The notes beneath the pieces are model-generated. The model made no database searches. It was not told the DNA's origin and was given only the letters and a program-made list of their open reading frames with translations. A program made the translations under genes and the position numbers. This document shows positions 1-53,816 of a stretch of 62,608 nucleotides of DNA, piece by piece (within the stretch, counting starts at the first letter, position 1; every line of letters starts with the position of its first letter). Origin of the DNA: Polymyxa betae A26-41 (taxonomy: Eukaryota > Protista > Endomyxa: Phytomyxea); assembly GCA_003693705.1 (NCBI GenBank), contig RBZT01000508.1:1-62608 (forward strand), in the 5' to 3' direction.

Positions 1-161
1 ACGGTACGAGTCAATACGCTGCTGACAGTTGCTGTTTCGAGAGGTCCGACTAATTTGAGATCTTCCCTGGGATGATATTCTTTGATAACCTTGATCAAGG
101 CCGGGGTATGAGTGGTTTCGAGCCAGTGTTCTGAGAGCAATAACGATTTCTTCGGGGGCAT
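1..161 (-). CDS. 5' part of a hypothetical ORF running off the window (MPPKKSLLLSEHWLETTHTPALIKVIKEY...)
   Basis: ATG on the minus strand followed by an open frame to the window edge; no recognisable domain. Confidence 0.3.
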   Translation of the reverse strand, partial: MPPKKSLLLSEHWLETTHTPALIKVIKEYHPREDLKLVGPLETATVSSVLTRT

Positions 162-313
162 GATTGATACTCCGAGTACGTGCTATTGACCAACGATAGG
201 ACGAATGACAGCCGTCAGGACAACCGAATCAAGAAACGAGGCAGCCGCAGCGCATTTCACACACGAAGGGCGAGCACTACTTCATGATGCACAGTCCAGT
301 GAGCTGGAGTTAA

Positions 314-620
314 GAGTTCGTCTGGAGGCAGGCTGAAAACGCCGTTCCGTGGCTCAAAACGCCGTTTTGAAACTGAGTTGCAACTGTCTGGAGGCAAAAC
401 GGAGCCTCATCCGAAAACGCAGTTTTCTTTTCAAAACGGAGTGCGTGTCGCCGCACCTCCCTGACGCACAGGATTCTGCGCAAACGGCGTTTTGTCTTGG
501 GTGTCTGGAGATTCCAAGCCCATCAAAACGCCGTTTTAACAGAACGCCGTTACGACGATTTGAAACAACGGCGTTTTGCCGTAACGGAGTTTTGAAACAC
601 GGTCGCGTCCAGACGCGCTC
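314..620. mobile_element. Tourist-like MITE (PIF/Harbinger superfamily, non-autonomous)
   Basis: TAA on both sides (311-313, 621-623); imperfect TIR gagttcgtctggaggc versus the reverse complement of the right end gagcgcgtctggacgc (13/16); interior packed with AAACG(C/G)CGTTT-like palindromes. Confidence 0.65.
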
Positions 621-27200: not shown

Positions 27201-28005
27201 TAAAGCTGAGGATTATATCGCTGATGTTCGACTGATTTTCACAAACTGTTCAGCATATAATGGTGAAGGGACTCCTATTCGTACACTCGGAAATCGTATG
27301 GCTGGAGTTTTCGAGTCCCATCTAGAAAAAACTGACATTCAGGCATCTCTGGATGAAATTCGCATCAAACTCGAACAGAAACGAGAAGAGAAAATTCGAA
27401 AAGAAAAAGAGAAGGAAGAGAAGAAAGTCGCCATTCAACAAAAAGCTGCTAAGCAAGCCTCGGAATCTGCAAAACGAAAAGCTGATGGCGGTGATGTACA
27501 TGGTCCGCCTCAGAAAGCCGCTAAGATTGACCATAGTAAAGCCAGGAGACCGTTGCCACCCGTACCGAGTGCGGTCTCAGATGAGCTGGTGTTCAAAACT
27601 TTACCCCCAAGAATCCCCATGCCTGTTTCAGTTCGTAAGAAGCTGTTGCCGTTAATACGCTCCCAAATCAGCACCTTAAAGTTGATACCAAAATCGATGT
27701 TATCTTCAAATTCAACTGACGGTCCAAAGACTGCTGAAGCTGATAAAAGCAACGAAGAAGCGGTACAACTTCTCGCTAGGGGATCAAATGGGATTAAGTT
27801 TCGGCTTGGTGCCAAGTTCAAAACAAGGACCAGACCTCAGAAAGAAGTCAGTTGTTCTCGCGCCGGTCCTGTTTTTGCTAATTCCATGGACGCTGATGAT
27901 GCGATGAATATCGATTCCTACAGCCAATGGGATTCGAAGGTTCAGTCATGGCTTCAGAATATGCAGTCGGAATCAAACACTTCAGTCGATTGTTGGGCAA
28001 GATAG
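24279..28005 (+). CDS. Six-bromodomain protein
   Basis: Six bromodomains (F..PV...Y...PMDL..V / NC..YN patterns) after joining exons; start MGGWKKEFQSILSRLK. Confidence 0.85.
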
Positions 28006-28152
28006 AGCTCTCTTTTCTAAGGGCTGATTTGATCTACATCCCATTCCATATATCAATGAGATCAAGTAATTGTTAATATACTATGTATTGAATAGATTAA
28101 TTATTAAATATTTATAACAGAGATAGAATCCAAGCATGTCCGCCAATGCTTT

Positions 28153-29031
28153 TCATTGGCAGTTTGAAGTTTTGTCAGAATGAATTCTGCCATTCCTGAG
28201 ACGTAGCCTGTCCAAGTTGGGACTTAGTTCGCTGTTAGCATTTTGTTTTGATTTCGGAGAATGGACAGTCCGCTTTCTCAAAGAAACCTTTGCTTTGCGA
28301 AGAAGAGCTTCATTGAGGCGATAACCAAGCTTTTTGAGTGATAGAGTAAAAAAATCGCCACAAACAAGAACGGATTCTTTCAGGGTATTGAGGTCCAAGC
28401 GAATGTGATTAAAGGACTCAGTAAGGGTGGACATACTCTGGAGCTTCTCCTGGCGATTCAATGAAGACTGAATTGTTCTCTGAAAACGCAGTTCTTGCAC
28501 TGATCTCTCCAGTTCAGCGATCTTTCCCTCTGCGTAGTGTCGATACGCTTGGAATTCATCAAGGGAGAGGCGAAGCTCATTCTGACATTCTGATACGCTG
28601 CGATGTGCAGCTTGTAAAGCTAATAGCAGCCCATAAACGTCAGCGTTTTGTTCAGAGTCAATTCGGGTAATGTTACACGAGCGAGATTTAGCATCATTTG
28701 TACTTTCTGGAATCTCATCGTATGGATATATATTTGGAGTTTCTCCCAGCTGCTTATCAGAGGTGCTGACATTTGTTGTTAGTTGGACGTCAGCATTGTT
28801 GACATTGACAAGCGAAGCAACTGACGACGGACTCGTTCGTCTTTCACTTTCACAAGGAGGAGACGTATTAGTTTTGGGAGAATAACTAGTGCCGTCATCA
28901 TATTGAAAATTAAGTTCTAGCTGAGCTCCCGTAATTTCTTGAGCAGAGCATGGCCCGGAATCTACTGCGGTCTGTAGATCTGGATTGACACCTCGATAGA
29001 AATCGGCCAAGACCGAGCTCTTCATCACCAC
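28153..29031 (-). CDS. Hypothetical coiled-coil protein (probable further 5' exons to ~29310)
   Basis: 292-aa open frame with a heptad region; no domain recognised. Confidence 0.5.
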   Translation of the reverse strand: MVMKSSVLADFYRGVNPDLQTAVDSGPCSAQEITGAQLELNFQYDDGTSYSPKTNTSPPCESERRTSPSSVASLVNVNNADVQLTTNVSTSDKQLGETPNIYPYDEIPESTNDAKSRSCNITRIDSEQNADVYGLLLALQAAHRSVSECQNELRLSLDEFQAYRHYAEGKIAELERSVQELRFQRTIQSSLNRQEKLQSMSTLTESFNHIRLDLNTLKESVLVCGDFFTLSLKKLGYRLNEALLRKAKVSLRKRTVHSPKSKQNANSELSPNLDRLRLRNGRIHSDKTSNCQ

Positions 29032-29436
29032 ATCATTACGAATGAATAAAAGTGTGTATTGAATGAAAGCAAAATTGAAACTTAGGAGGAGGCCAAGCGG
29101 GAGGCCAATCCTTCACAGATAGCCTCAATGTGAATGCCACAAACAAGATGATGGTCGTCTGATCAAACTTTTACAGATTATCAGAATGATCAACTCATGT
29201 CATCATGATACTGGTCGATAATGCTGATTGGGGATGAGGCTCGATTGCCTGGCTACAAAATCGCTTCTCGCCAAACAACCGTTAAATGGATGAGCTGCAT
29301 AGCCCATAGCCCATTTAGGGGGCCCTCAATACCGTCATTTCCGTTCTTTCAAATCCCGTAGATTTGCTTTTTTCCTGACTTGATGACCGGTTTGATCATT
29401 CTTCATACAACTTAATACCTCACTCCTTTTTAACCA

Positions 29437-30422
29437 ATGGAAACCACTATCGTATTTGTCGTCGTCATCTCGGCTTTCTTCGTCCCGTTCTGCGATGCGG
29501 CCATAATATCCGATTTGAGTCAGAGCCAGGAGACGTCCCAAGGAATGATGCACCAAATGGTAGTAACCTCTGCCTTGTGAATATCCACCTATCTGATTGC
29601 GTTTATCTGCAGGAACAAGGCTCAGACTATCCCTCCCATGGATTCAAGCAGAACGTCTGGCTCGTGAGAGATTTGGCCGTGAACACCGTCGAAAAGAATG
29701 TCAATGACATCGACCTGCATAACAATGTATGGTGTCGAATTGATGCTGGAAGAGAGACAGGCATTGACATGATCATATCTCAAATCGTATTGGTAAGTTT
29801 ATTAGTCCAATAATTAGAGGGTTATGCTAATGTGCTATAGCTGCGGGTTCTCTTTCGAATCATGTTCAATGCTTTCAGAGAATGGGATGCTAAATCAACA
29901 TTATCACAGATTGTTGCTTCCTTTCGTGCTTCGGAAGAAGGCAATCAGTATCTGCGTTCAATGTCGTTCAAAAACGTGAAAGACGCAGCTCCAAGGCTGA
30001 CAAGATCGTTGACAAGGCCGACGATGCCTCAAATCAAGTCGTTGTCGCGAACCATATCGAGGAATGCTGTGCCTTTGACGAGAACCGTCTCGAAGAATGT
30101 GATCGAAATGCATGTTGATGCAGCAAGGTTCTTCCATCAATTCAGACTCGTGAAATGCATCTTGAAGAACATCATCCCGACCGATGGAGATCTGATCGAT
30201 GTCGCTAGTAATGTTATCTTAGTAATGTGGCTTACTTGTACTGCTCATGCTTTGGCCAAGAACGCCTTCGATGACCCTGTTAGTCTGATCACGTACCAGC
30301 TAACAAGAGAAGGAATCACTCTTAGAAGGTTCTTAATGGATATGGTGGCTCTCATTTACATAAGTTTTTACGTCATACGATTTATTTGTAGGTTGACATG
30401 CAGATTTATCTGCAAACACTGA
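29437..30422 (+). CDS. Secreted/membrane orphan protein (3 exons)
   Basis: Signal peptide METTIVFVVVISAFFVPFCDA; two GT-AG introns preserve the frame; hydrophobic C-terminal segments. Confidence 0.65.
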
Positions 30423-43500: not shown

Positions 43501-46500
43501 GATAATCAGAGTCAAGGTTGCTAAATTGCCGATAATGATTGCTGCCTAAGTCCATAAGAGCATTGTTTCCTCCTTTCAGCGATCCTGATAATGAAAGCCA
43601 TCGTTTTTGAACGTCATTCCAAACCTACACGGCCTATAAGAAAAACAACTGCGATGCAACCATGGTTGACCTCGGTACCTCTAAAATGTCGTTGATAGCG
43701 CCGAGACAAGTAACTCGCTGCTCTATCAAATCAGCAACGCAGCTTGCATAAGGCGATGAACGCATCGAAGTTAGGGTGGAGGCCTGATCTGAAACGACAG
43801 AGAAAATTATCGCCCAGTTGCAGATTACATCGCCACTGAATTGAAATCGCAGATCTCGCAGTTCATTTTCCATTTCTTCAAGGCATCGCATCTGGTAGCG
43901 CTCTGTTCAACAATAAACAAGAACGGAACCATATGATTACCAAAGCATTCTCCCCCTACAGAAATAATGTCAAAATAATGGGATGCGCGACACCAACGTA
44001 AAATCAAACGAAACGAAACAATCAGAAATGCGATTCAAAAGTGACCTGGGCTTGTTCGACAATGGAATGAATTTGGTCTCGAATCTTCAATAAATGACCA
44101 CCACAAGACCACACATCAGCAACACTTAGCTCTGACCAGACGGTGACATTTGCTGTGTCACCGAACAACAAGGCGACTATTTGTTTGTGATGAACAGATC
44201 GCAAACCCGACGCATGAAGAGCCACGACAATGCTGTTTATCGACAGCAAAAACTCTACACGCTTGAACAAGACAGTATGCGCATCGTAAAGCCGGATTGC
44301 ATTTGGCATTGCCATTAATGTCGTTTGTAGTTGTGTTAACGCAGAACGAATCGTCGATTGCCCTACAATAGTACATTAGCAATTGACTGCATCAAGATGC
44401 CAAATACCAGAATGAGCGAGCTTCAGTTGCCCAAGGTCGTGTAAAACGGAACAGACTGGCGAAAGCTTGGACCAGAGAGATCTTAGATCACATATGTCAC
44501 TGTCAAGAGCTTCAAACATCTTTTCGCAATCGTAAATATCAAGAAGAGAAGACGAGGCCTGAAAAATGTCAGGCTGAAGACAGCAGAATTGGACAAATAG
44601 TGACCTCGGCCTCAGCTTCATGAGCGTTTTCAGAGCTGGCTTCAGAGATGAACTGAAGAGCATGGGTAACAGAAACTGCTTGTTGACGTAGATTAGAAGA
44701 TCGCTTATAAAAAAGATCCAATAAGAAAACGGCTTGGTCAGCTTGACATTGACCATCAACGGGGCGTTTTTGTTGCCATTCGTCGTTAAGTTGATGGGTG
44801 GCGGCTGCACAAAATGGCATGAAAATGGGATTAAAAAGGTGCTAGCAGCTAACCAATGAGAGCATGGCGCTCAGAGTTGAGATTTACATCGATAAGGTGA
44901 TAAACGTTTCGCAATTGCTGAAGACGTATTTGAAATATCTGTCCAACAGCGTCATTAGTGGATTCAATCGTTTGAATAGATGGCGGCATGTCCGAAGAAG
45001 TTAGAAATCTCGAACAAGAAATTATCAAATTAACGCGTTCTCCCCAAGTTGATAAGTGTTTCTGGACAGAGCGCAGCAGATCGAGCGAGATACATAGCTC
45101 GGGGACGGGGACGGAATGTAGCCGTGATGTCATCGCCTCTAATCGGGAACGAGTTGTCGAAAGAATCTCATAAACCACACGCTTCTCTTGAGAAACCAGC
45201 GTGTTTAAATGCAATGTAATCTGGCGATTGATGGAAGATATTCGGTCCTGAACAAGCAGAATCACAAAAAGCACACACACAGAATAGGATGTCCGACTTC
45301 GATAAGAGGGTGAATGTTCTGAGAAATTATTGTGATGGCGCCGATATGATAGTCGCACCGATCAGATAAAAATCGATCGCGATCTGAGCATAGCGAATTT
45401 AACATCGAGCGACAGCTGTGAATATCAGGGATTTTCAGTATGACATCCTTCTCATCGATGTCTAAAAAACTTTGAAACTTCATAATTTCAGATAAGTAAT
45501 CACTGGAAGATTTCAACCAGCCGCTAAAACTTGCCAAACAAGAAATGATAGGATTTAAGTCATCAACAGCGGCATGAGAATTTAACATTGGACTCGGAGC
45601 GTGCAACTTCGATAAACTAACAAACGGCCAAATGAACGCTTCTAGCTGTTGCATCCTAACAGCCAGCTCAAGGATGATTCGACGAAAAAGAGCAACGCTT
45701 ACAGCAAAAGACGCGCTTCATGAAGAGATGGACTGAAAGTCAAGACGTTATTGCTTATCTCAACTTGGATCGTAATAGTGGGGCGATTGCGCGCTTCAGT
45801 AAGCCACTTTTGAATTAAAATCGCAAAACGCTCGCGAAGTTGATTCTGAACAATATGATTGATACGGGCTAGCCATTTGCCACAGTTGACATGATCCGGA
45901 TGTTGGATAACAGAGTGAACATGAACCTGAATGTCTTTCATAAGCTGGGAAACGGTGTCCCCATTGCATTCGGCAATCGAGCGACATAAAGAGCCGATAG
46001 CGGACTCGGCGATGGAAACAACCTCGTATGATGATTGAAGAGAAGCGACAGCATCCGCAACGCAATCGATCGCTTCTTTAAGACGAGAATCGCTGGTTCC
46101 CCAACGTAAAGTTGTTAGATTCCGGATAGCAGTTTGTGATTTAAGTTTAAGTTCGGATAGGACCAGTGAAGGACCGGAATCGTTGCTCATTCGTGTTATC
46201 GAACAAAGGTAGGCATGGAGGATATCGTTCAAGCGCACAGCAAACGGCTGTTTCGATTTAGCTTCGCTGCATCGAACACGGATATCGTAAGGAATGCGAA
46301 GCTCAAGGGCAGACAGAGCCCGGGCCTCTTTCAGCAAAGCGGATAAGGCATTGCTGAAATTAACGTCTGGAATCAGACGTTTACGGGCAGCTGGAATACG
46401 TAATAGAGCGTCGTCAAGCGAGAACAACACGGACGATGATACTGATTTCCAGTTCTCCAGCTCAGCATCCCCATGCCTGTGCAAGCGCTGCCAGAAGTTA

Positions 46501-48733
46501 AAACACAATGAAAAATGATCCAATTTTATGAACGGTACCTGCCTGAAAGCATCACAATCATGCTTCAGAGCAATACCATCAACATGATGCGTCCAACGAG
46601 GGCCAAGAACGCTGCTGATTCGTTCAAGCCAAAGGTCCATGTTTCGCTCAATACCGCGGCTGTAGATACGTCAACACAGATTGAAATAGAATGAAGGAAG
46701 TCATACACCCAAAGCAGAATGCCAGTAATCGTAGGGACATTTCTTGCACGACACGACCTGGCCATCTTGCCGCTATAAAATCCAAGATCATAGCGTTCCT
46801 GCAGAGATTGCAGTGCTTGACGAGCACATGATAATAAGCATTCCTGATAAGGAACAAGAGCTGTTTGAATTTGGGGTCGAGCTAGAAGTCCTTTGAAACG
46901 AGAGCAAACAGCAAACATGACGTCAGTATCATTAGACGCCTTGTCCAGCTCTGAACGGATTCGCTGTTCCAGTTCCGATTCCAAATTTTCGATTCGTTTC
47001 GAGTACTGGGTTGCGCAAGTGGTATATGCAACTGATTCTAAATCGAGAACATTGACGCCGCGAAATGTCTGCAATGATGATTCCAAGTCAATGCAGTAAT
47101 CAGGGAATGTATCCCGTAAGATGGTCCACAAATCATGATGCGATTTGCGAAGAGTGTGGATCTCAGCCACGCGAACGTTGAATTCGGTTAAGTGTTTGTC
47201 GTCGTATTTAAGCGTGTCGCTAAGCGCCAGTAAGGTTTCACTTCGCTATAACAAAGGCTGAGAAATACGGACCAGCATATTGTTCTGTTACCTGCTGCCT
47301 TGAGCAAGATTGCAATCTGAATTCGCGAATATCGTCGCGAAATGAAGCTCCTTCGGCAAGCCACAGAGTTATGGCGCTCTGAACAGATGATGTCACAGCT
47401 TTAAAATTATCAAAAGAAAGATTGAATAGATGAGTCCCATCAGCCTACAAACAATTCAGAATCTTATCATTTCGTTGAGAAATACCGAACCAAAGTTTGC
47501 AATCGAGCAGCTGTATCCCGGCATAATGTCTGTATAAGTTGCAATGCTCGAGAAATCGGGTAGTCGATACGCTTCACCATCCGCAAATGTACGAATACCT
47601 TACTGATTGCATGGCATAAATCGCTGATATTAGTTGCATAGGTTAAAGTCTTGATCGGGAGCTCTTGTAAAAACTCACAGTAAGCTGCAAAACATTGTCA
47701 GCATGTAACAAATATATATACGATATTGAACATGCACGTTTTTTTGAAGAATAATTACGCGAGCTTATTCGTACCTGTAGTCTTAGCCTTCAAATCGCTG
47801 AATCCGGATTCATTGTGAAATCCCGTTACAACAAACAATCGACGTTTCTCTTGCAGTATTCCCAGCGTTAACTGGACAACATTTGACAGCAGCTGTTGAT
47901 GGATGAGTTCCACAGCAGTAGCTACTGATGCCCAAAAAGAAATCTCGTCTGCCACAGTTCCAAGGCGAGGATCCCGATCTAGCAAAGCAAACTCTTTAAA
48001 TTTCTGCCGCCACTGTGTCACTTTTTTCTGCAAAGCATTCAGGATACGGTCATCGTCGCCAACAGCGGAACAAATTTCTTGAAGAGTGGACTTAGGGCTG
48101 GAATGTAGGTAATTGCAAACCCATTCTGGAAGCTCAAGCGTCGTTGTGGGAATCTTGACGGTAACAGAAGTCCTATTTGTGTCAAATGTTAACATCAGCT
48201 GAAAAACACGATTGTAAACAGAGCAATGGTCAACCTGTTGAGGTCGGATTCTAATTCGGCTAACTTGGCTGAGAAATCAGTCAAGGAGGTGGCCTGATGC
48301 TTCATCAATATGATATGTGCCTTCAATTGATTCGCGATCGGGGTTTTAGACTGGATTGGATAAGCTGCGATCTGATATTGTAGGCCCTCCATGTTCTCTT
48401 CCAGAGGATCATTGTCGATCCGGTAAAAGGCGATGCGTTTATGATTGTCATCCTACACAGATATCTTTGAAAACGATTCCAGAAACCCATAAATTTATCG
48501 ACCGGTTCTGAGGCATTTTGAAACGGAATCGTAGCGGAAAGGGTAGGAATTCGACCTTCACAGGCCGGATGAACAGCAACGATCAGCAGCGACCCATTGC
48601 TGTGTGCTTTACTAAATGCATGGACAGCCGCAATGCTGTCTGGATTCCAGTTGGAAGGACCGACTTCTACGCCAGCGAAACATGATGTGAGACGAGATAG
48701 ATAGGAAATGATGGCATCATGATCCGTAGCCAT
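31531..48733 (-). CDS. DYNC1H1: Cytoplasmic dynein heavy chain 1-like (divergent, many introns)
   Basis: [17 protein letters not shown]; [17 protein letters not shown]; P-loops [26 protein letters not shown] and GTSGAGKT; WGCFDEFNR; [19 protein letters not shown]; FCDEINLP; NPPAAVK; C-terminal RGVALI. Confidence 0.92.
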
Positions 48734-49559
48734 CTTAAATGATGAGGGTACTGGATCCACAACGTTACCCAAAACAAAAAAGCCCGCCTGCATGGTCCAG
48801 GGGCTACACAGTCTTTACTCCTACAATATGAAGATTCATTCAACTGGAAACTCATCTCTATGTCAGCGCGCTTCTAGTAGCACTTTCAGCAATAGAGAAA
48901 TGAATATTGAGCTTAAGCATTAGTGTCCTAGGCTTTACACTGGACCGGAACATGATTTGATGCAAGCTTTAATTGGTTGCGTCGCATTAAGGCTAGACTA
49001 TGCAACTTGCGATCTAGCCTCCGCTTACAATACAATTCTGATCAATTTCTGATTTTGTTGGCTGAGAAGTGGCCAACCTGAATCAATGTTAGTAAGTCTC
49101 CAAGTGATTGTATTGTTATAATATCTACTCTAACTGTGCCCCACAGTTATACTGCGAATTCGATGACAGTGGTCATTCTCTTATCTGTATATAGTTCTTA
49201 TAAGTATAGCCCAATAGGAAACACATTCCTTCAATTCAAGCTTCATTGTTGACAAGGGGGTTGGGTCGTCCAACACAGAACCAATCGTTTAGTCAGTAGC
49301 TGCTACTAAACAAAATCGGAGCTAGACAGCTTATTGAATCCGCCAACATTTTTTCAGTGGCCGATTCATGATTGCTGTCTTTTATAAACCAAGTCACTGC
49401 TTGGATTGAATGATCCGAAGCTGTAAATGCAACAAACCATATCATAACCTACCAGTGACATCAGCATGCTCAAAATCTGTTTTCTGGGGATCCCAACATG
49501 CACTGAATCGTATATCGCAGTCCACTGACTCAGATACATCTTATGAAAGAGCAGTTGCT

Positions 49560-52346
49560 ATGGGTGAAAAGGGATTGGTCGCGTGCCCAGTTCCAGTACA
49601 ACAGATCCAGCAGTTTCCTCCAATGGCGACATCAGCGGACAATGAAGGCTTCTTTGAAGGGACCAATCATCTGGAATTGATAGCAGTGTGCGTTCTAGTT
49701 GTCTCTGTTGCTCTTCACTCACTTCTACTCTACGTCCATAAAGTTAGTATAGTTTCATTGACGATGTTATGTGAGAACTTGTGCCATTGACAACTGCCCT
49801 AGATCACTCGAAGGCATCGCAATGTAGCACAAATGCTTGATCGAATGTTCCATGGTCGATATCTGGTTGCTGTTTGTTGGTCTTGCTGAATCCGAATCAG
49901 AGCTCATGATATTGGGTCTCATTAGCACGATCCTGTATTTCTGTGAAGCATCGAATCTGTTCTCTCACACTGAGCTTGAACGGATCCATCAAATTCATCT
50001 CACTGTAAATCATTACGAAATGCACATCGTGATGCGTTTAACGTTTGGTCAGCTATTCTTCACTGTGATTGGATGGGTATTTGCAAGTATCTTGCTATTG
50101 GCTACGAGTATCTAGTAAGTACCTCGCATTGTCAAGATATTATGTTTGATCATTTTCAGCATATCGTTCACTTGGAATAAATCAGAGCAGTCCATACCGC
50201 AGCAAAACAGACTACAGCAAGAACTCGATCAAATCAAAAGTGAGTTGGCTGAAACCAGGTTTTGGCTCCTTCCATTTCACTTGGCGAAATTGACCAGAAG
50301 GAACGAGGTTTGTACTACTTCATTGCCTTATCTACCTGCTATAACATATGATGTAGCTTGAGAATTTTGTCAACTACTCTGAGGTCCGCCAACAATTTAT
50401 CGATTCAAACCATTTGCCGAAAAATTACAATTTCGGATACTATCTCCGAAAGTGCAAACGGCATGTCTTTTTGACTTTGGGCGGGATTCACACATCTGCC
50501 TGGATTACGGTAACTGTTGATATTCGTAGAAATTAGGAGTGACTAATTGTATCTAGGTGGCATTTGTACTGTTGCTTGATATGATGTATCGAAATTATTT
50601 CGCATTACTGAGTAGCGTCCCGCAATTCGTGAAAGACTTTGAGTTCTATGCAAATGGAGCGCTGATGTTCGTGTCAAGCGTTGTCACAGCACTTTCACTG
50701 ATTGTTTTCTACAAATGTAAAAACATTCTAAAACATGTAAGAAACCGCCAAACCTGTAGTTGAATTAAGTTTTCCCCAGTTGCAAACATCCGAAATGATC
50801 AAATTCGATGCTCTAGCGAACAACTATATGATTCGGTCTAACTTTGATGATGCTCTGAACGACGATTTGGAGTTTGATGAAGACTCAGGTTAGTTCGCCC
50901 TGTTTACCGCTGTGAGAAAACTTCTTATATCTGTTGAAGGGCTCGCTGAAATGACAAGAAATGCTCGTGTTTACAGCCATGATAAATGGGTGCATGGAGA
51001 TGAGAACCGAAACGTTGTTCAAGGAGTTGCAATTGTTGTATCGGAATACAGATATGAATATCGACCCAACAAGCAGCAGGAACTGTATAGGCTTTGCAAC
51101 GAGCTGTGCTAAATTAGTGACATGTTGATTGTAGGTTCTGGTTCGGGTCTCACCTCGTCCTATTGCGTTTCATCCAGTCGATCTTGGCGATCATGATCAT
51201 CATATGCTCAATTATGGTAGCACACTACGTTGCAGGTGGAAACATCAGTTTCTGCATGATGACAACTGACAGCTTGCAATCAGGAGGAAAAGTGCTATAT
51301 AGTTGGACACCAGTCATTCTGACAATCATGTTCATATTGGTATTCGTGTCGATCGCCTCTGCAATTCCGCTTTATACAATAATTGTTCATGTTGGAGAGC
51401 TGGCAGTACGTTATTTCTAGCTTGCTATTTGGCATCTGTTCGAACGGTTTTTAGGATATCAAAACGGTTCGAGAAGCTGCCAGGAAAATTGAGCAACGCA
51501 GGCACACGGCCAGACAGGCGAAATTGACAGTTACTGCCCCGAAAGCAACCTGTAAGCTCCCAGTTTGTTTGCTACATATCACTAGGTCATGCGAATTTAC
51601 AAGTTGCCAATCGCATGGAAAGAATTCTGATCAGTTCATGGATGGAGTCCCTGATACAATGGCTAATCATTGCGAACCTTGTAGCAGTAGCCATACCCCT
51701 GGTGTTTTCAGAAAATCATTCTGTTCAAAATGCTGGTGATGTCATTACTTTGAGCATTACAGGTAGGCATCTAACCATTCGAGGTCTCTCGGTGCTAATC
51801 TCCCATGTGCTACTCAGTTTTCTTCCTCCTAGAAATTATTATCAGAGGAAGTATTTTGGGATTTTCGTATTTCTTTATTGATTGGTGGACCATTGTTGAT
51901 TGCGTCGTTGTGATTGTGTCGTTTTTGGCTGCGGTTATCCAGTTTTGGTATCCCATCGCCGATATAACGACCGTATTGCTGGGCATGCGTTTGCTTGAAA
52001 GTGGACGAGTCTGGAGGATAGGTCTGATGTCTTGATCACTTGTTAAGTGAGCTAACAATATGTTTCAGCCCGTAAAATCAAAAGGGCAAGGGCTGCGAAG
52101 CAATATCAACAGCAACATCACGATCCTTGGGATTACTCCAAAGATGATAACCCCATGCAACCTACCCAACCATCATACATTCCAGAAGATCATTCTGAAA
52201 AGTATTCATCCTCTGAAATTGATGAAGAGTATACTGATGCACCGAGAAGGGGTCAACGATCCTTAGTTAATGCATCAGAGGACGTCGGGTCAGTTGTTGT
52301 TAGTCTGAACCGAGGACAAGCATCTGAAATATTATCACAAATCTGA
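49560..52346 (+). CDS. MLO-family 7TM protein fused to a C-terminal Hv1-like voltage-sensor domain
   Basis: Spliced MLO motifs ELMILGLIS, IHQIH, VRQQFI...H...YNFGYYL, LFWFG...LLRFIQ and AIPLYTIIVHVG; then S1-S4 with FFLLE, WTIVD and RVWRIAR; all junctions are GT-AG and in frame. Confidence 0.75.
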
Positions 52347-53255: not shown

Positions 53256-53816
53256 ATGGCGATTCGTATATCGACCGTGGCCATGGTTGTCTTCCTGGCC
53301 TTAGCTGTGGGATTCTGTGCAGGCGGCAGGAAGTTCAAGACCTACTATGAGGTTCTAAACATCACGAGATCGGCGTCGACCAGGGATGTCAAGCTGGCGT
53401 ACTACAAAGTCTCGCGAATCAATCATCCAGATCGAAACAATAAGAGTAATGCTGATCGACGAATGGCTGAGGTGAATCGGGCCTATGAAGTCTTAAAGAA
53501 TGTTAACCAGAGAGCTGCCTACGATCTGTATTTGACCATGAATGGAAATGCTCACCATCCTGATTGGGATAAGAATGGAAGTTTCTCACAATGGCAGACC
53601 TTGATGAATATGTTGTATCTCAGCGATTATCATTGGTTCTGGCAGATCACCATCGTTCTGCTGCTGCTAGGAGTCGGATCCGCTCTTCTGGGCGCCGTTC
53701 TCACTCTAATCACACCCATTATGAAATTTGCCAGTTCTTGGACGTTCTGGATCATGCTTGGCATTTCCCTGTTTAACCAGGGATCGACATGGATGTATGG
53801 CGGCAAGAAGAAATAA
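53256..53816 (+). CDS. ER-type DnaJ protein (signal peptide, J domain, C-terminal TM segments)
   Basis: YYEVL, HPD, EVNRAYEVL and RAAYD; N-terminal hydrophobic signal. Confidence 0.9.
   Translation: MAIRISTVAMVVFLALAVGFCAGGRKFKTYYEVLNITRSASTRDVKLAYYKVSRINHPDRNNKSNADRRMAEVNRAYEVLKNVNQRAAYDLYLTMNGNAHHPDWDKNGSFSQWQTLMNMLYLSDYHWFWQITIVLLLLGVGSALLGAVLTLITPIMKFASSWTFWIMLGISLFNQGSTWMYGGKKK

Follow-up and report, generated by a model that had tools for sequence, protein, structure and literature searches.

A divergent MLO-like domain followed by a pore-less voltage-sensor domain in a single predicted gene of Polymyxa betae

A gene on the forward strand of the window, i.e. the whole 62,608-nucleotide stretch of Polymyxa betae DNA that was analysed, is predicted to encode, in a single chain, a seven-helix domain of divergent MLO-like type and, after it, a four-helix voltage-sensor domain. 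In the papers searched, we found no description of such a protein, in line with an earlier note on this DNA whose author did not know it from the literature either, and the fusion is apparently an undescribed architecture. Judging from the gene and its relatives, the fusion is very probably real and conserved. The complete reading, in which one gene yields an 11-helix membrane protein whose sensor controls the activity of the MLO-like domain, receives a probability of roughly 0.6 from us.

Read from the genomic sequence, the spliced frame comprises 14 exons and 13 GT-AG introns of 34–60 nt (Table 1). It runs from an ATG at 49560 to a stop codon at 52344–52346, and the resulting CDS of 2163 nt (720 codons plus stop) lacks internal stops. 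A second in-frame ATG at 49410 makes the start codon uncertain. Five of the 13 junctions (introns 2, 6, 10, 12 and 13) are fixed to the codon, since the spliced sequence aligns gap-free to an uninterrupted stretch in a relative; the region in which the two domains meet and the sensor is encoded holds four junctions, of which three are fixed in this manner. For intron 10, 22 residues spanning the junction align in this way to both contig L004 and a paralog that lies on another contig, C806, of the same genome; the first 11 residues of exon 11 align to L004 immediately after the end of its TM7. Intron 11 preserves the frame with either of its acceptors, which comparison cannot separate because they sit in a fast-evolving linker: the 34-nt form is shorter than the remaining 12 introns (43–60 nt), while in its acceptor the AG follows a pyrimidine, the commoner arrangement. 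The motifs and introns named in the earlier note were all found where it had placed them: the frame passes through introns 10 and 11 as it described, intron 13 does split the RxWRxxR string of S4, and the two parts have no intergenic space between them and appear to belong to one gene.

Table 1. Predicted features of the fusion gene, with coordinates in the window.
Feature	Position	Strand	Basis or remark
Fusion gene, entire coding region	49560..52346	+	Open spliced frame; collinear with L004, L005 and C806 paralog
Second in-frame ATG, 150 nt before 49560	49410..49412	+	ORF 49410–49790 shares frame
Exon 1: N-terminus and TM1 (49680–49736)	49560..49742	+	TM1 matches C806 paralog
Exon 2: short cytosolic loop 1	49803..49854	+	Exon 2/3 junction uninterrupted in C806 paralog
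Exon 3: TM2 with MLO-type E-L-M-x-L-G motif, short outer loop, TM3 start	49901..50004	+	Homologous paralog piece matches Pfam Mlo positions 26–69, E 0.007
Exon 4: TM3	50053..50114	+	Spliced frame, hydropathy, relatives' alignment
Exon 5: large cytosolic loop 2, first part	50160..50307	+	Spliced frame, relatives' alignment
Exon 6: conserved loop-2 motif block, first half of TM4	50357..50509	+	Pfam Mlo match
Exon 7: TM4 (second half), outer loop, TM5	50557..50736	+	Intron 6 junction uninterrupted in L004
Exon 8: cytosolic loop 3, acidic start	50780..50888	+	Spliced frame, relatives' alignment
Exon 9: cytosolic loop 3, remainder	50940..51084	+	Spliced frame, relatives' alignment
Exon 10: FWF motif, TM6, outer loop 3, TM7 (51304–51396)	51135..51405	+	Relatives' Mlo matches
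Intron 10, 49 nt, immediately 3′ of TM7	51406..51454	+	
Exon 11: basic helix after TM7 (conserved), linker (variable)	51455..51551	+	
Intron 11: donor 51552, acceptor 51585 (34 nt) or 51603 (52 nt)	51552..51603	+	
Exon 12: linker end, S1 (51636–51707), S1–S2 loop, S2 start	51586..51762	+	S1 aligns to L004 and L005
Exon 13: S2 (Phe-x-x-Glu), S3 (Asp), most of S4	51818..52021	+	Pfam Ion_trans match
Intron 13, 47 nt, within S4	52022..52068	+	Spliced S4 aligns gap-free to uninterrupted L004 S4
Exon 14: basic S4 end, 82-residue polar acidic tail, stop	52069..52346	+	

The fusion is also borne out by its relatives. Ten of the 14 exons (3–10, 12 and 13) match L004 in the same order, and six (1, 3, 6, 7, 8 and 10) match the paralog, whose parts are ordered identically to those of the fusion gene. 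Short exon fragments, which MAFFT misplaced, were compared by local pairwise alignment. In L004, the end of TM7, the linker, S1–S4 and the tail up to the stop codon form a single open frame of 262 codons, a length expected by chance with a probability of about 4e-7. Its first in-frame Met occurs only within S2, and no stop separates TM7 from the sensor. L005, in which the frame is open up to S1 and Met is absent throughout that stretch, is 84% identical to L004 at the nucleotide level. Exon differences between the two fall mostly on third codon positions, and exon gaps measure 3 nt only, except for a single 1-nt gap at the extreme end of the overlap; the introns carry gaps of 5 and 13 nt. Since the same fusion occurs in a paralog of this genome and in other organisms, we consider the architecture to be real.

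A wrong joining of two adjacent genes, an MLO-like one ending soon after TM7 and a sensor gene starting from the in-frame ATG at 51615 shortly ahead of S1, is a rival reading, helped by that ATG and by intron 11, which homology does not validate. Against this stand the absence of stop or start codons between TM7 and the sensor in L004 and L005, the identical layout of the paralog and the distance between TM7 and S1, which is only ~240 nt with two introns included. Moreover, the intron 10 junction is confirmed at codon level, and with this intron removed, the frame of the MLO-like part cannot stop without first running into S1. We therefore judge two separate genes to be highly improbable, even though the ATG at 51615 could allow an additional sensor-only product in this species.

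Turning to the N-terminal part, the Pfam Mlo profile (PF03094) matches exon 6 of the fusion gene (profile positions 237–283, E 0.041, 12.7 bits), two pieces of the paralog (231–293, E 0.0013, 17.6 bits; 26–69, E 0.007, 15.2 bits), L004 and L005 (both 344–403, 12.8 and 13.6 bits) and L010, a metagenome relative (346–457, 20.1 bits). Taken across the family, the matches cover four collinear regions with E values from 0.041 to 2.3e-4. For four of the six pieces, Mlo is the top or sole family; the other two each have two weak matches, of which Mlo ranks second. The pieces were scored singly and each lies below the 24-bit cut-off, so that of the two profile searches proposed in the earlier note, only the one with Ion_trans exceeded its threshold (see below). 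Scanning this genome and control genomes with PF03094 gave no match, the fusion locus included, which is uninformative because the gene is split by introns; a PDB search with the MLO exon likewise returned no match.

Topology and motifs point in the same direction. Hydropathy gives seven helices ahead of the sensor, followed by S1–S3, whereas the amphipathic S4 was placed through alignment and its Pfam match, together giving the approximately 11 transmembrane helices anticipated by the earlier note. Lys plus Arg counts in successive loops (1, 5, 1, 13, 2, 12, 1 and 11) alternate as expected for an MLO-like domain with its N-terminus outside and C-terminus inside and a normally oriented sensor, and loops 2 and 3 of the MLO-like domain are large (91 and 93 residues). 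The FWF motif common to all MLO clades (Kusch et al.) is present exactly at residues 380–382, immediately ahead of TM6. The loop-2 block, Arg-x-x-Phe-Ile with Tyr-Asn-Phe 13 residues further on, is near to, if not exactly of, the all-clade form TLR[LH]GFI and [FY]DF given by the same authors. The first outer loop of ~13 residues contains no Cys and thus lacks the extracellular cysteines of land-plant MLOs, and a Trp-containing calmodulin-binding site after TM7 was not found in the fusion protein. Both features are likewise missing from non-plant MLO-like proteins (Kusch et al. 2016, PMC4824068), meaning that the land-plant type is excluded and the wider MLO family is not. On these grounds, we read the N-terminal part as divergent but MLO-like, in which form the MLO identity proposed earlier is supported.

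The C-terminal part is, by the same kind of evidence, an S1–S4 voltage-sensor domain without a pore. Pfam Ion_trans (PF00520) matches exon 13 just above its cut-off of 25 bits (E 1.1e-5, 25.2 bits, profile 45–103), the relative P0003 more strongly (E 8.5e-10, 38.7 bits) and the paralog less so (E 7.8e-4, 19.1 bits). All of these matches lie within positions ~11–111 of the 241-position profile and hence cover S1–S4 only. An own-genome scan matched the fusion locus solely at positions 40–104 and yielded no second Ion_trans match on its contig. No pore segments (S5-P-S6) were found after S4, which is followed by ~80 polar residues and the stop codon, and the tail in exon 14 matched no Pfam family. 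In the fusion gene, L004 and the paralog alike, the charge-transfer centre is intact, with Phe and Glu in S2 and Asp in S3, and S4 carries Arg at positions 1, 3 and 5; the S4 of the paralog was read in the tblastn register, which is uncertain as it differs by three residues from that of MAFFT. Together with the Ion_trans match, these residues bear out the four-helix sensor module described in the earlier note. Atlas searches yielded no more than weak leads, the nearest clusters being generic Ion_trans with all scores under 0.9, and an AlphaFold2 model of the P0003 sensor from a four-row alignment (pLDDT 60.6, pTM 0.28) was judged unusable.

Among representative proteins, exon 13 found one true relative, P0003; two further matches proved to be spurious repeat proteins. 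Word-index protein searches returned the queries' own contigs and P0005 and nothing else, and an initial metagenome scan found no relatives.

The earlier note had called the sensor Hv1-like, a label that we do not retain. Hv1 channels are defined by an acidic residue in S1 together with RxWRxxR in S4 (PMC10377628). At the middle of S1, the paralog instead has Gln and the other three genes (the fusion gene, L004 and L005) have Asn, so that none of the four genes compared carries the acidic selectivity residue (Asp or Glu). RxWRxxR is present in the S4 of the fusion gene, yet L004 has Ser in place of the Trp and Leu in place of the middle Arg, and the S4 of the paralog also lacks the Trp. For P0003, the top per-domain scores in the PDB are close to one another for the Hv1 chimera 3wkv (20.7 bits), Ci-VSP (about 18.5–20 bits) and domains II and IV of Cav2.1 (16.6 and 18.7 bits), and in the Cav2.1 alignment the S1 Asn pairs with the S1 Asn of that sensor. 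The scores thus show no preference for Hv1, and the sensor, as far as its residues tell, is not an Hv1-type proton channel. That the sensor is itself a conduction path, with the MLO-like protein carrying a tethered proton or leak channel of the Hv1 kind, would fit the missing pore domain, the RxWRxxR string and the appearance of 3wkv among the weak matches; given an S1 without the defining acid, an S4 Trp confined to the fusion gene's copy and the Cav2.1 pairing, we regard it as very improbable.

Whether the sensor responds to voltage is a separate matter. Position 2 of S4 is never basic (Glu, Gly or Gln) and L004 has Leu at position 4, a pattern that could leave little gating charge. The sensor of the metagenome relative (L010/L011) appears degenerate when read by eye, its pieces are unrecognised by Pfam and the putative S4 of L010 shows only two Arg. 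The TM7–S1 linker also appears nearly neutral, with 23.7% differences between L004 and L005 and 15 nonsynonymous against seven synonymous codon changes. All of this would suit a genuine fusion whose sensor is voltage-insensitive and serves the MLO-like protein in structure, assembly, trafficking or lipid contact. Such a role seems unlikely to us in view of the retained charge-transfer centre and S4 arginines, the fact that three S4 charges suffice for Hv1 (PMC10377628) and the conservation of the sensor exon, which equals that of the MLO core: exon 13 is 44% identical to P0003 and among the best conserved exons of the gene, compared to 25–55% for the MLO exons, of which exon 6 is the best conserved (55% to L004, 47% to the paralog).

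We favour a protein in which the sensor works on the MLO-like domain. Its predicted order is the MLO-like seven-helix domain, oriented N-out and C-in, a short cytosolic linker opening with the conserved basic helix, the S1–S4 sensor in its usual orientation and without pore segments, and finally a disordered polar tail. Because the charge-transfer centre and the three S4 arginines are kept, S4 would be expected to move with the membrane potential. This movement might be passed to the MLO-like domain via the TM7–S1 linker or via a basic helix extending S4, and the sensor would thereby set the activity of that domain, most likely cation (Ca2+) entry, much as an appended sensor governs the Na+/H+ exchanger SLC9C1 or, in voltage-sensing phosphatases, the enzyme. 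We rate voltage control of the MLO-like domain at slightly under an even chance. More tentatively, the protein could be a natural voltage-gated MLO channel, with S1–S4 gating the cation pore of oligomeric MLO-type seven-helix domains.

What the MLO-like domain itself does bears on this last step. Plant MLOs are reported as Ca2+-permeable channels, and a 2026 preprint on a plant MLO still weighs a direct against an indirect role in Ca2+ influx. The domain might accordingly be a receptor or scaffold, with voltage altering interactions or signalling rather than Ca2+ flux through the domain, a possibility helped by the lack of functional studies of MLO outside plants and by the fact that the fusion protein has neither the invariant outer cysteines nor the calmodulin-binding site that mark plant MLOs. 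The reported channel activity of plant MLOs speaks against it, as do the Mlo-matching TM2, TM3 and FWF–TM6 regions, which include helices predicted to line the trimer pore, and we hold it to be quite improbable.

MLO proteins are important in plant disease and fertilisation. We know of no experimental MLO structure and, to our knowledge, MLO gating is debated. Since voltage is a stimulus that the experimenter can set, a natural fusion would make the activity of the MLO domain directly accessible to voltage clamp. If the protein were a voltage-gated MLO channel, it would provide a ready handle on recordings of MLO gating and represent a voltage-gated pore unrelated to the classical voltage-gated superfamily. 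The partners of voltage sensors known to us are of few kinds, namely classical pores, a phosphatase, the SLC9C1 exchanger and the sensor's own proton path, to which an MLO-type partner, if true, would add a further one.

The fusion also informs the evolution of the family. The earlier note had proposed that the sensor replaces or extends the calmodulin-binding tail, a land-plant feature that is absent from or unrecognisable in protist MLO-like proteins (PMC4824068); its idea of an extension therefore holds while that of a replacement does not, and the sensor is best seen as an addition to a protist MLO-like protein rather than a swap. It would appear that protist MLO-like proteins acquired regulatory modules unlike the plant calmodulin site.

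Compared to known systems, the fusion shares with plant and protist members of the MLO family (PF03094) the seven helices in N-out/C-in orientation, the large loops 2 and 3, the loop-2 motif block and the FWF ahead of TM6, but it adds a C-terminal S1–S4 sensor and has a merely ~13-residue first outer loop. Known fusion partners of MLO are EF-hand/calmodulin-like, glycosyl hydrolase, RNase H-like, LEA and mechanosensitive-channel domains; a voltage sensor is not among them. With Hv1, it has in common a pore-less S1–S4, the S2 Phe-x-x-Glu and, in the fusion gene's own copy, the S4 RxWRxxR string, whereas it lacks the S1 acid, its motif is unconserved in relatives, its tail shows no obvious coiled coil and its sensor is tethered to a seven-helix domain. 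Ci-VSP, which is among the weak PDB matches of the sensor, and TMEM266 resemble it in having a pore-less sensor that acts on or sits beside a non-pore effector and an S1 without acid, yet the effector, where known, is a cytosolic enzyme that follows S4, as opposed to a membrane domain ahead of S1. A parallel in layout is SLC9C1, the sperm Na+/H+ exchanger, in which a membrane domain from outside the channel superfamily is likewise followed by an S1–S4 sensor of the Nav/Cav type in a single chain. SLC9C1 has an NHE transporter as its partner and a cyclic-nucleotide-binding domain, where the fusion has an MLO-like domain, a short basic helix and a disordered tail; the parallel implies homology for the sensor fold only, and coupling in the MLO-like fusion is inferred. 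The SLC9C1 sensor, whose S1 has an Asn in contact with S4 arginines, governs the activity of its partner domain and sets a precedent for joining a voltage sensor to a transport domain that is not a channel (PMC13095418).

The fusion gene has the appearance of a protist gene with numerous very short introns: computed splicing of 13 GT-AG introns (34-60 nt) joins 14 exons into a frame of 2163 nt, i.e. 720 codons, with no internal stops. The frame was read from the window sequence, homology searches were run per exon, and the question of whether this is one gene was decided by comparison with the sequences of relatives. Five junctions could be placed to the exact codon, since after splicing they align gap-free with uninterrupted sequence from a relative. 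For intron 2 this is the paralog and for intron 6 the contig L004; at intron 10, directly after TM7, the aligned stretch spans 22 residues across the junction, and the other two, introns 12 and 13, are both within the sensor. Intron 11 lies in the fast-evolving linker, where two acceptors both preserve the frame. The start codon is uncertain because a further in-frame ATG, with the frame open from there, lies 150 nt upstream of the start first chosen; L004 suggests a short N-terminus of ~20 residues before TM1. Upstream, a run of long minus-strand ORFs, apparently exons of a large gene, has its 5′ end toward that of the fusion gene, ~770 nt away; downstream, the ORF list holds a reading frame of 186 residues with hydrophobic ends and a J-domain-like His-Pro-Asp motif.

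Coordinates of the fusion gene, its relatives and its neighbours, with the profile regions of matches to Pfam Mlo (PF03094)
Feature	Sequence	Position (nt) or profile region	Strand	E-value
Fusion gene	window	49560-52346	+	
Further in-frame ATG	window	49410-49412	+	
Intron 11 acceptors	window	51585 and 51603	+	
In-frame ATG immediately before S1	window	51615-51617	+	
Downstream ORF	window	53256-53816	+	
Upstream ORFs	window	45699-48793	-	
Paralog (loci L007-L009)	C806	~27523-30050	+	
In-frame TAA (aligned to L004 ~1263)	L005	~424-426		
Microbial-mat relative	L010	2-2200		
Microbial-mat relative	L011	1775-4418		
Mlo match	paralog	profile 26-69		0.007
Mlo match	window gene	profile 237-283		0.041
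Mlo match	paralog	profile 231-293		0.0013
Mlo match	L004	profile 344-393		0.039
Mlo match	L005	profile 344-403		0.022
Mlo match	L010	profile 346-457		2.3e-4

With the sensor exon as query, a set of 1.84 billion representative proteins yielded one true relative, P0003 (45% identity), which is encoded on L004, an assembled contig of 3.5 kb. This contig holds the entire homologous gene, to which 10 exons of the window gene (3-10, 12 and 13) align in the same order, and on it a single unbroken frame of 262 codons runs from the end of TM7 through linker, S1-S4 and tail (chance ~4e-7). The opening ‘M’ of P0003 is a GTG picked by a prokaryotic gene caller; the earliest in-frame Met past TM7 lies within S2. 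Because the frame is unbroken and offers no Met before S2, this organism, going by its sequence, has no way of making the sensor except within the MLO-like chain. Two misjoined genes are thus an unlikely explanation, all the more since in the window gene, splicing of intron 10 leaves an MLO frame that ends only after passing S1 in another frame, which likewise argues against two genes. An in-frame ATG immediately before S1 could allow a sensor-only product through internal initiation or a second promoter; L004 and a second contig, L005, have no counterpart of it.

L005 shares 84% DNA identity with L004 and the same layout as far as S1, with no Met between the end of TM7 and S1. Exons of the two differ chiefly at third codon positions, with gaps of 3 nt only (except one 1-nt gap at the extreme end of the overlap), whereas their putative introns carry gaps of 5 and 13 nt and differ at 20-23% of positions. 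Relative to L004, a 3-nt insertion places an in-frame TAA within the best-conserved MLO exon of L005; pseudogene status, variation in the assembly and other causes are all conceivable. Searching the Polymyxa genome itself with the L004 proteins uncovered a paralog on another contig, C806, which is collinear with the window gene, has its parts in identical order from TM1 to S4 and carries short introns within the linker. The continuous frame of L004 and the shared order in the paralog bear out the earlier note's view of the MLO part and sensor as one gene; its listed motifs and introns are all present as well.

A second metagenome scan yielded L010 and L011 (98% identical to each other; GC 53%), in which a stop-free stretch of 687 codons comprises a giant cytosolic loop, FWF, MLO-like TM6 and TM7, the same conserved post-TM7 motif and a linker of ~225 codons. 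Beyond it, reading by eye finds S2 and S3 motifs like those of a sensor, then an S4 with few charges; this looks like a degenerate sensor, and its pieces on L010 did not match Pfam Ion_trans, though Mlo was matched on the same contig.

The N-terminal domain can be filed as a divergent MLO-like member, in keeping with the original proposal, based on piecewise profile matches, layout and motifs. Across the family, the Mlo matches cover four collinear profile regions, each weak singly because single exons are short. The E-values are scaled to 24,736 models; as Mlo had been named beforehand, the probability per model is at most ~1e-6. Scored separately, the paralog's two pieces total 32.8 bits (cut-off 24). 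Hydropathy of the window gene indicates a seven-helix layout in which Lys and Arg gather in every second loop; cytosolic loops 2 and 3 are large, and FWF stands immediately before TM6. This layout and the all-clade motifs found here match the published tabulation (Kusch et al., PMC4824068). The extracellular cysteines and calmodulin-binding Trp of plants are absent from the domain, as they are from non-plant MLO-like proteins (Kusch et al., PMC4824068).

The four-helix voltage-sensor module proposed for the C-terminal part is matched by Ion_trans in the window gene (exon 13: E 1.1e-5, 25.2 bits, cut-off 25, profile 45-103, i.e. S2-S4), in P0003 (E 8.5e-10, profile 11-110) and in the paralog (E 7.8e-4). 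None of these matches reaches the pore half of the profile, and S4 of the window gene is followed by ~80 polar residues and then the stop. Scanning the Polymyxa genome placed 34 Ion_trans matches elsewhere, and only profile 40-104 at the fusion locus; this 27-Mb genome has at least 34 matches over many contigs. The Phe-x-x-Glu of S2, the Asp of S3 and Arg at S4 positions 1, 3 and 5 are kept in the window gene, L004 and the paralog; in the same order, S4 position 2 is Glu, Gly and Gln, never basic, and position 4 is Arg, Leu and Arg.

The label ‘Hv1-like’ did not hold. The Hv family is marked by an acidic residue in mid-S1 plus RxWRxxR in S4 (PMC10377628). Of the four genes here, the paralog has Gln in mid-S1 and the others Asn; the paralog's S4 carries five or six Arg but lacks Trp. 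The S4 Trp is confined to the window copy, and in L004 the middle Arg is missing too. A PDB search aligned the S1 Asn with that of a Cav2.1 sensor, and per-domain scores show no preference (Hv1 chimera, 20.7 bits; Ci-VSP, ~19-20; Cav2.1 domains, 16.6-18.7). An Hv1-type conduction path, for which the RxWRxxR of the window copy might speak, is therefore unlikely, given that all four genes lack the mid-S1 acid and both L004 and the paralog the Trp; judged by residues and scores, the S1-S4 module is a generic sensor without a pore, outside the Hv family.

Listed MLO fusions include EF-hand, glycosyl hydrolase, RNase H-like, LEA and mechanosensitive-channel domains, with no voltage sensor among them (Kusch et al., PMC4824068). 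Full-text searches pairing MLO with voltage-sensor terms turned up nothing relevant; an unpublished database entry (InterPro, UniProt architectures) may exist. Reviews list pores, VSP, Hv1, TMEM266 and SLC9C1 as partners of voltage sensors (PMC10377628, PMC13095418).

Since the end of TM7 is cytosolic, S1 starts from the inner face of the membrane and the polarity of S4 is the normal one. A conserved basic helix of ~15 residues follows TM7 in all four genes. S4, too, continues into a basic helix; apart from the post-TM7 helix, the linker evolves near-neutrally (L004 versus L005). The best reading, by analogy, is that the sensor would set the activity of the MLO-like domain. Its main rival is a sensor that is no longer voltage-sensitive and plays a structural role instead. 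Control by the sensor would have a parallel in SLC9C1, a transporter governed by the sensor appended to it (PMC13095418): both place a sensor on a membrane domain—here, the fusion is known from sequence and the coupling is proposed.
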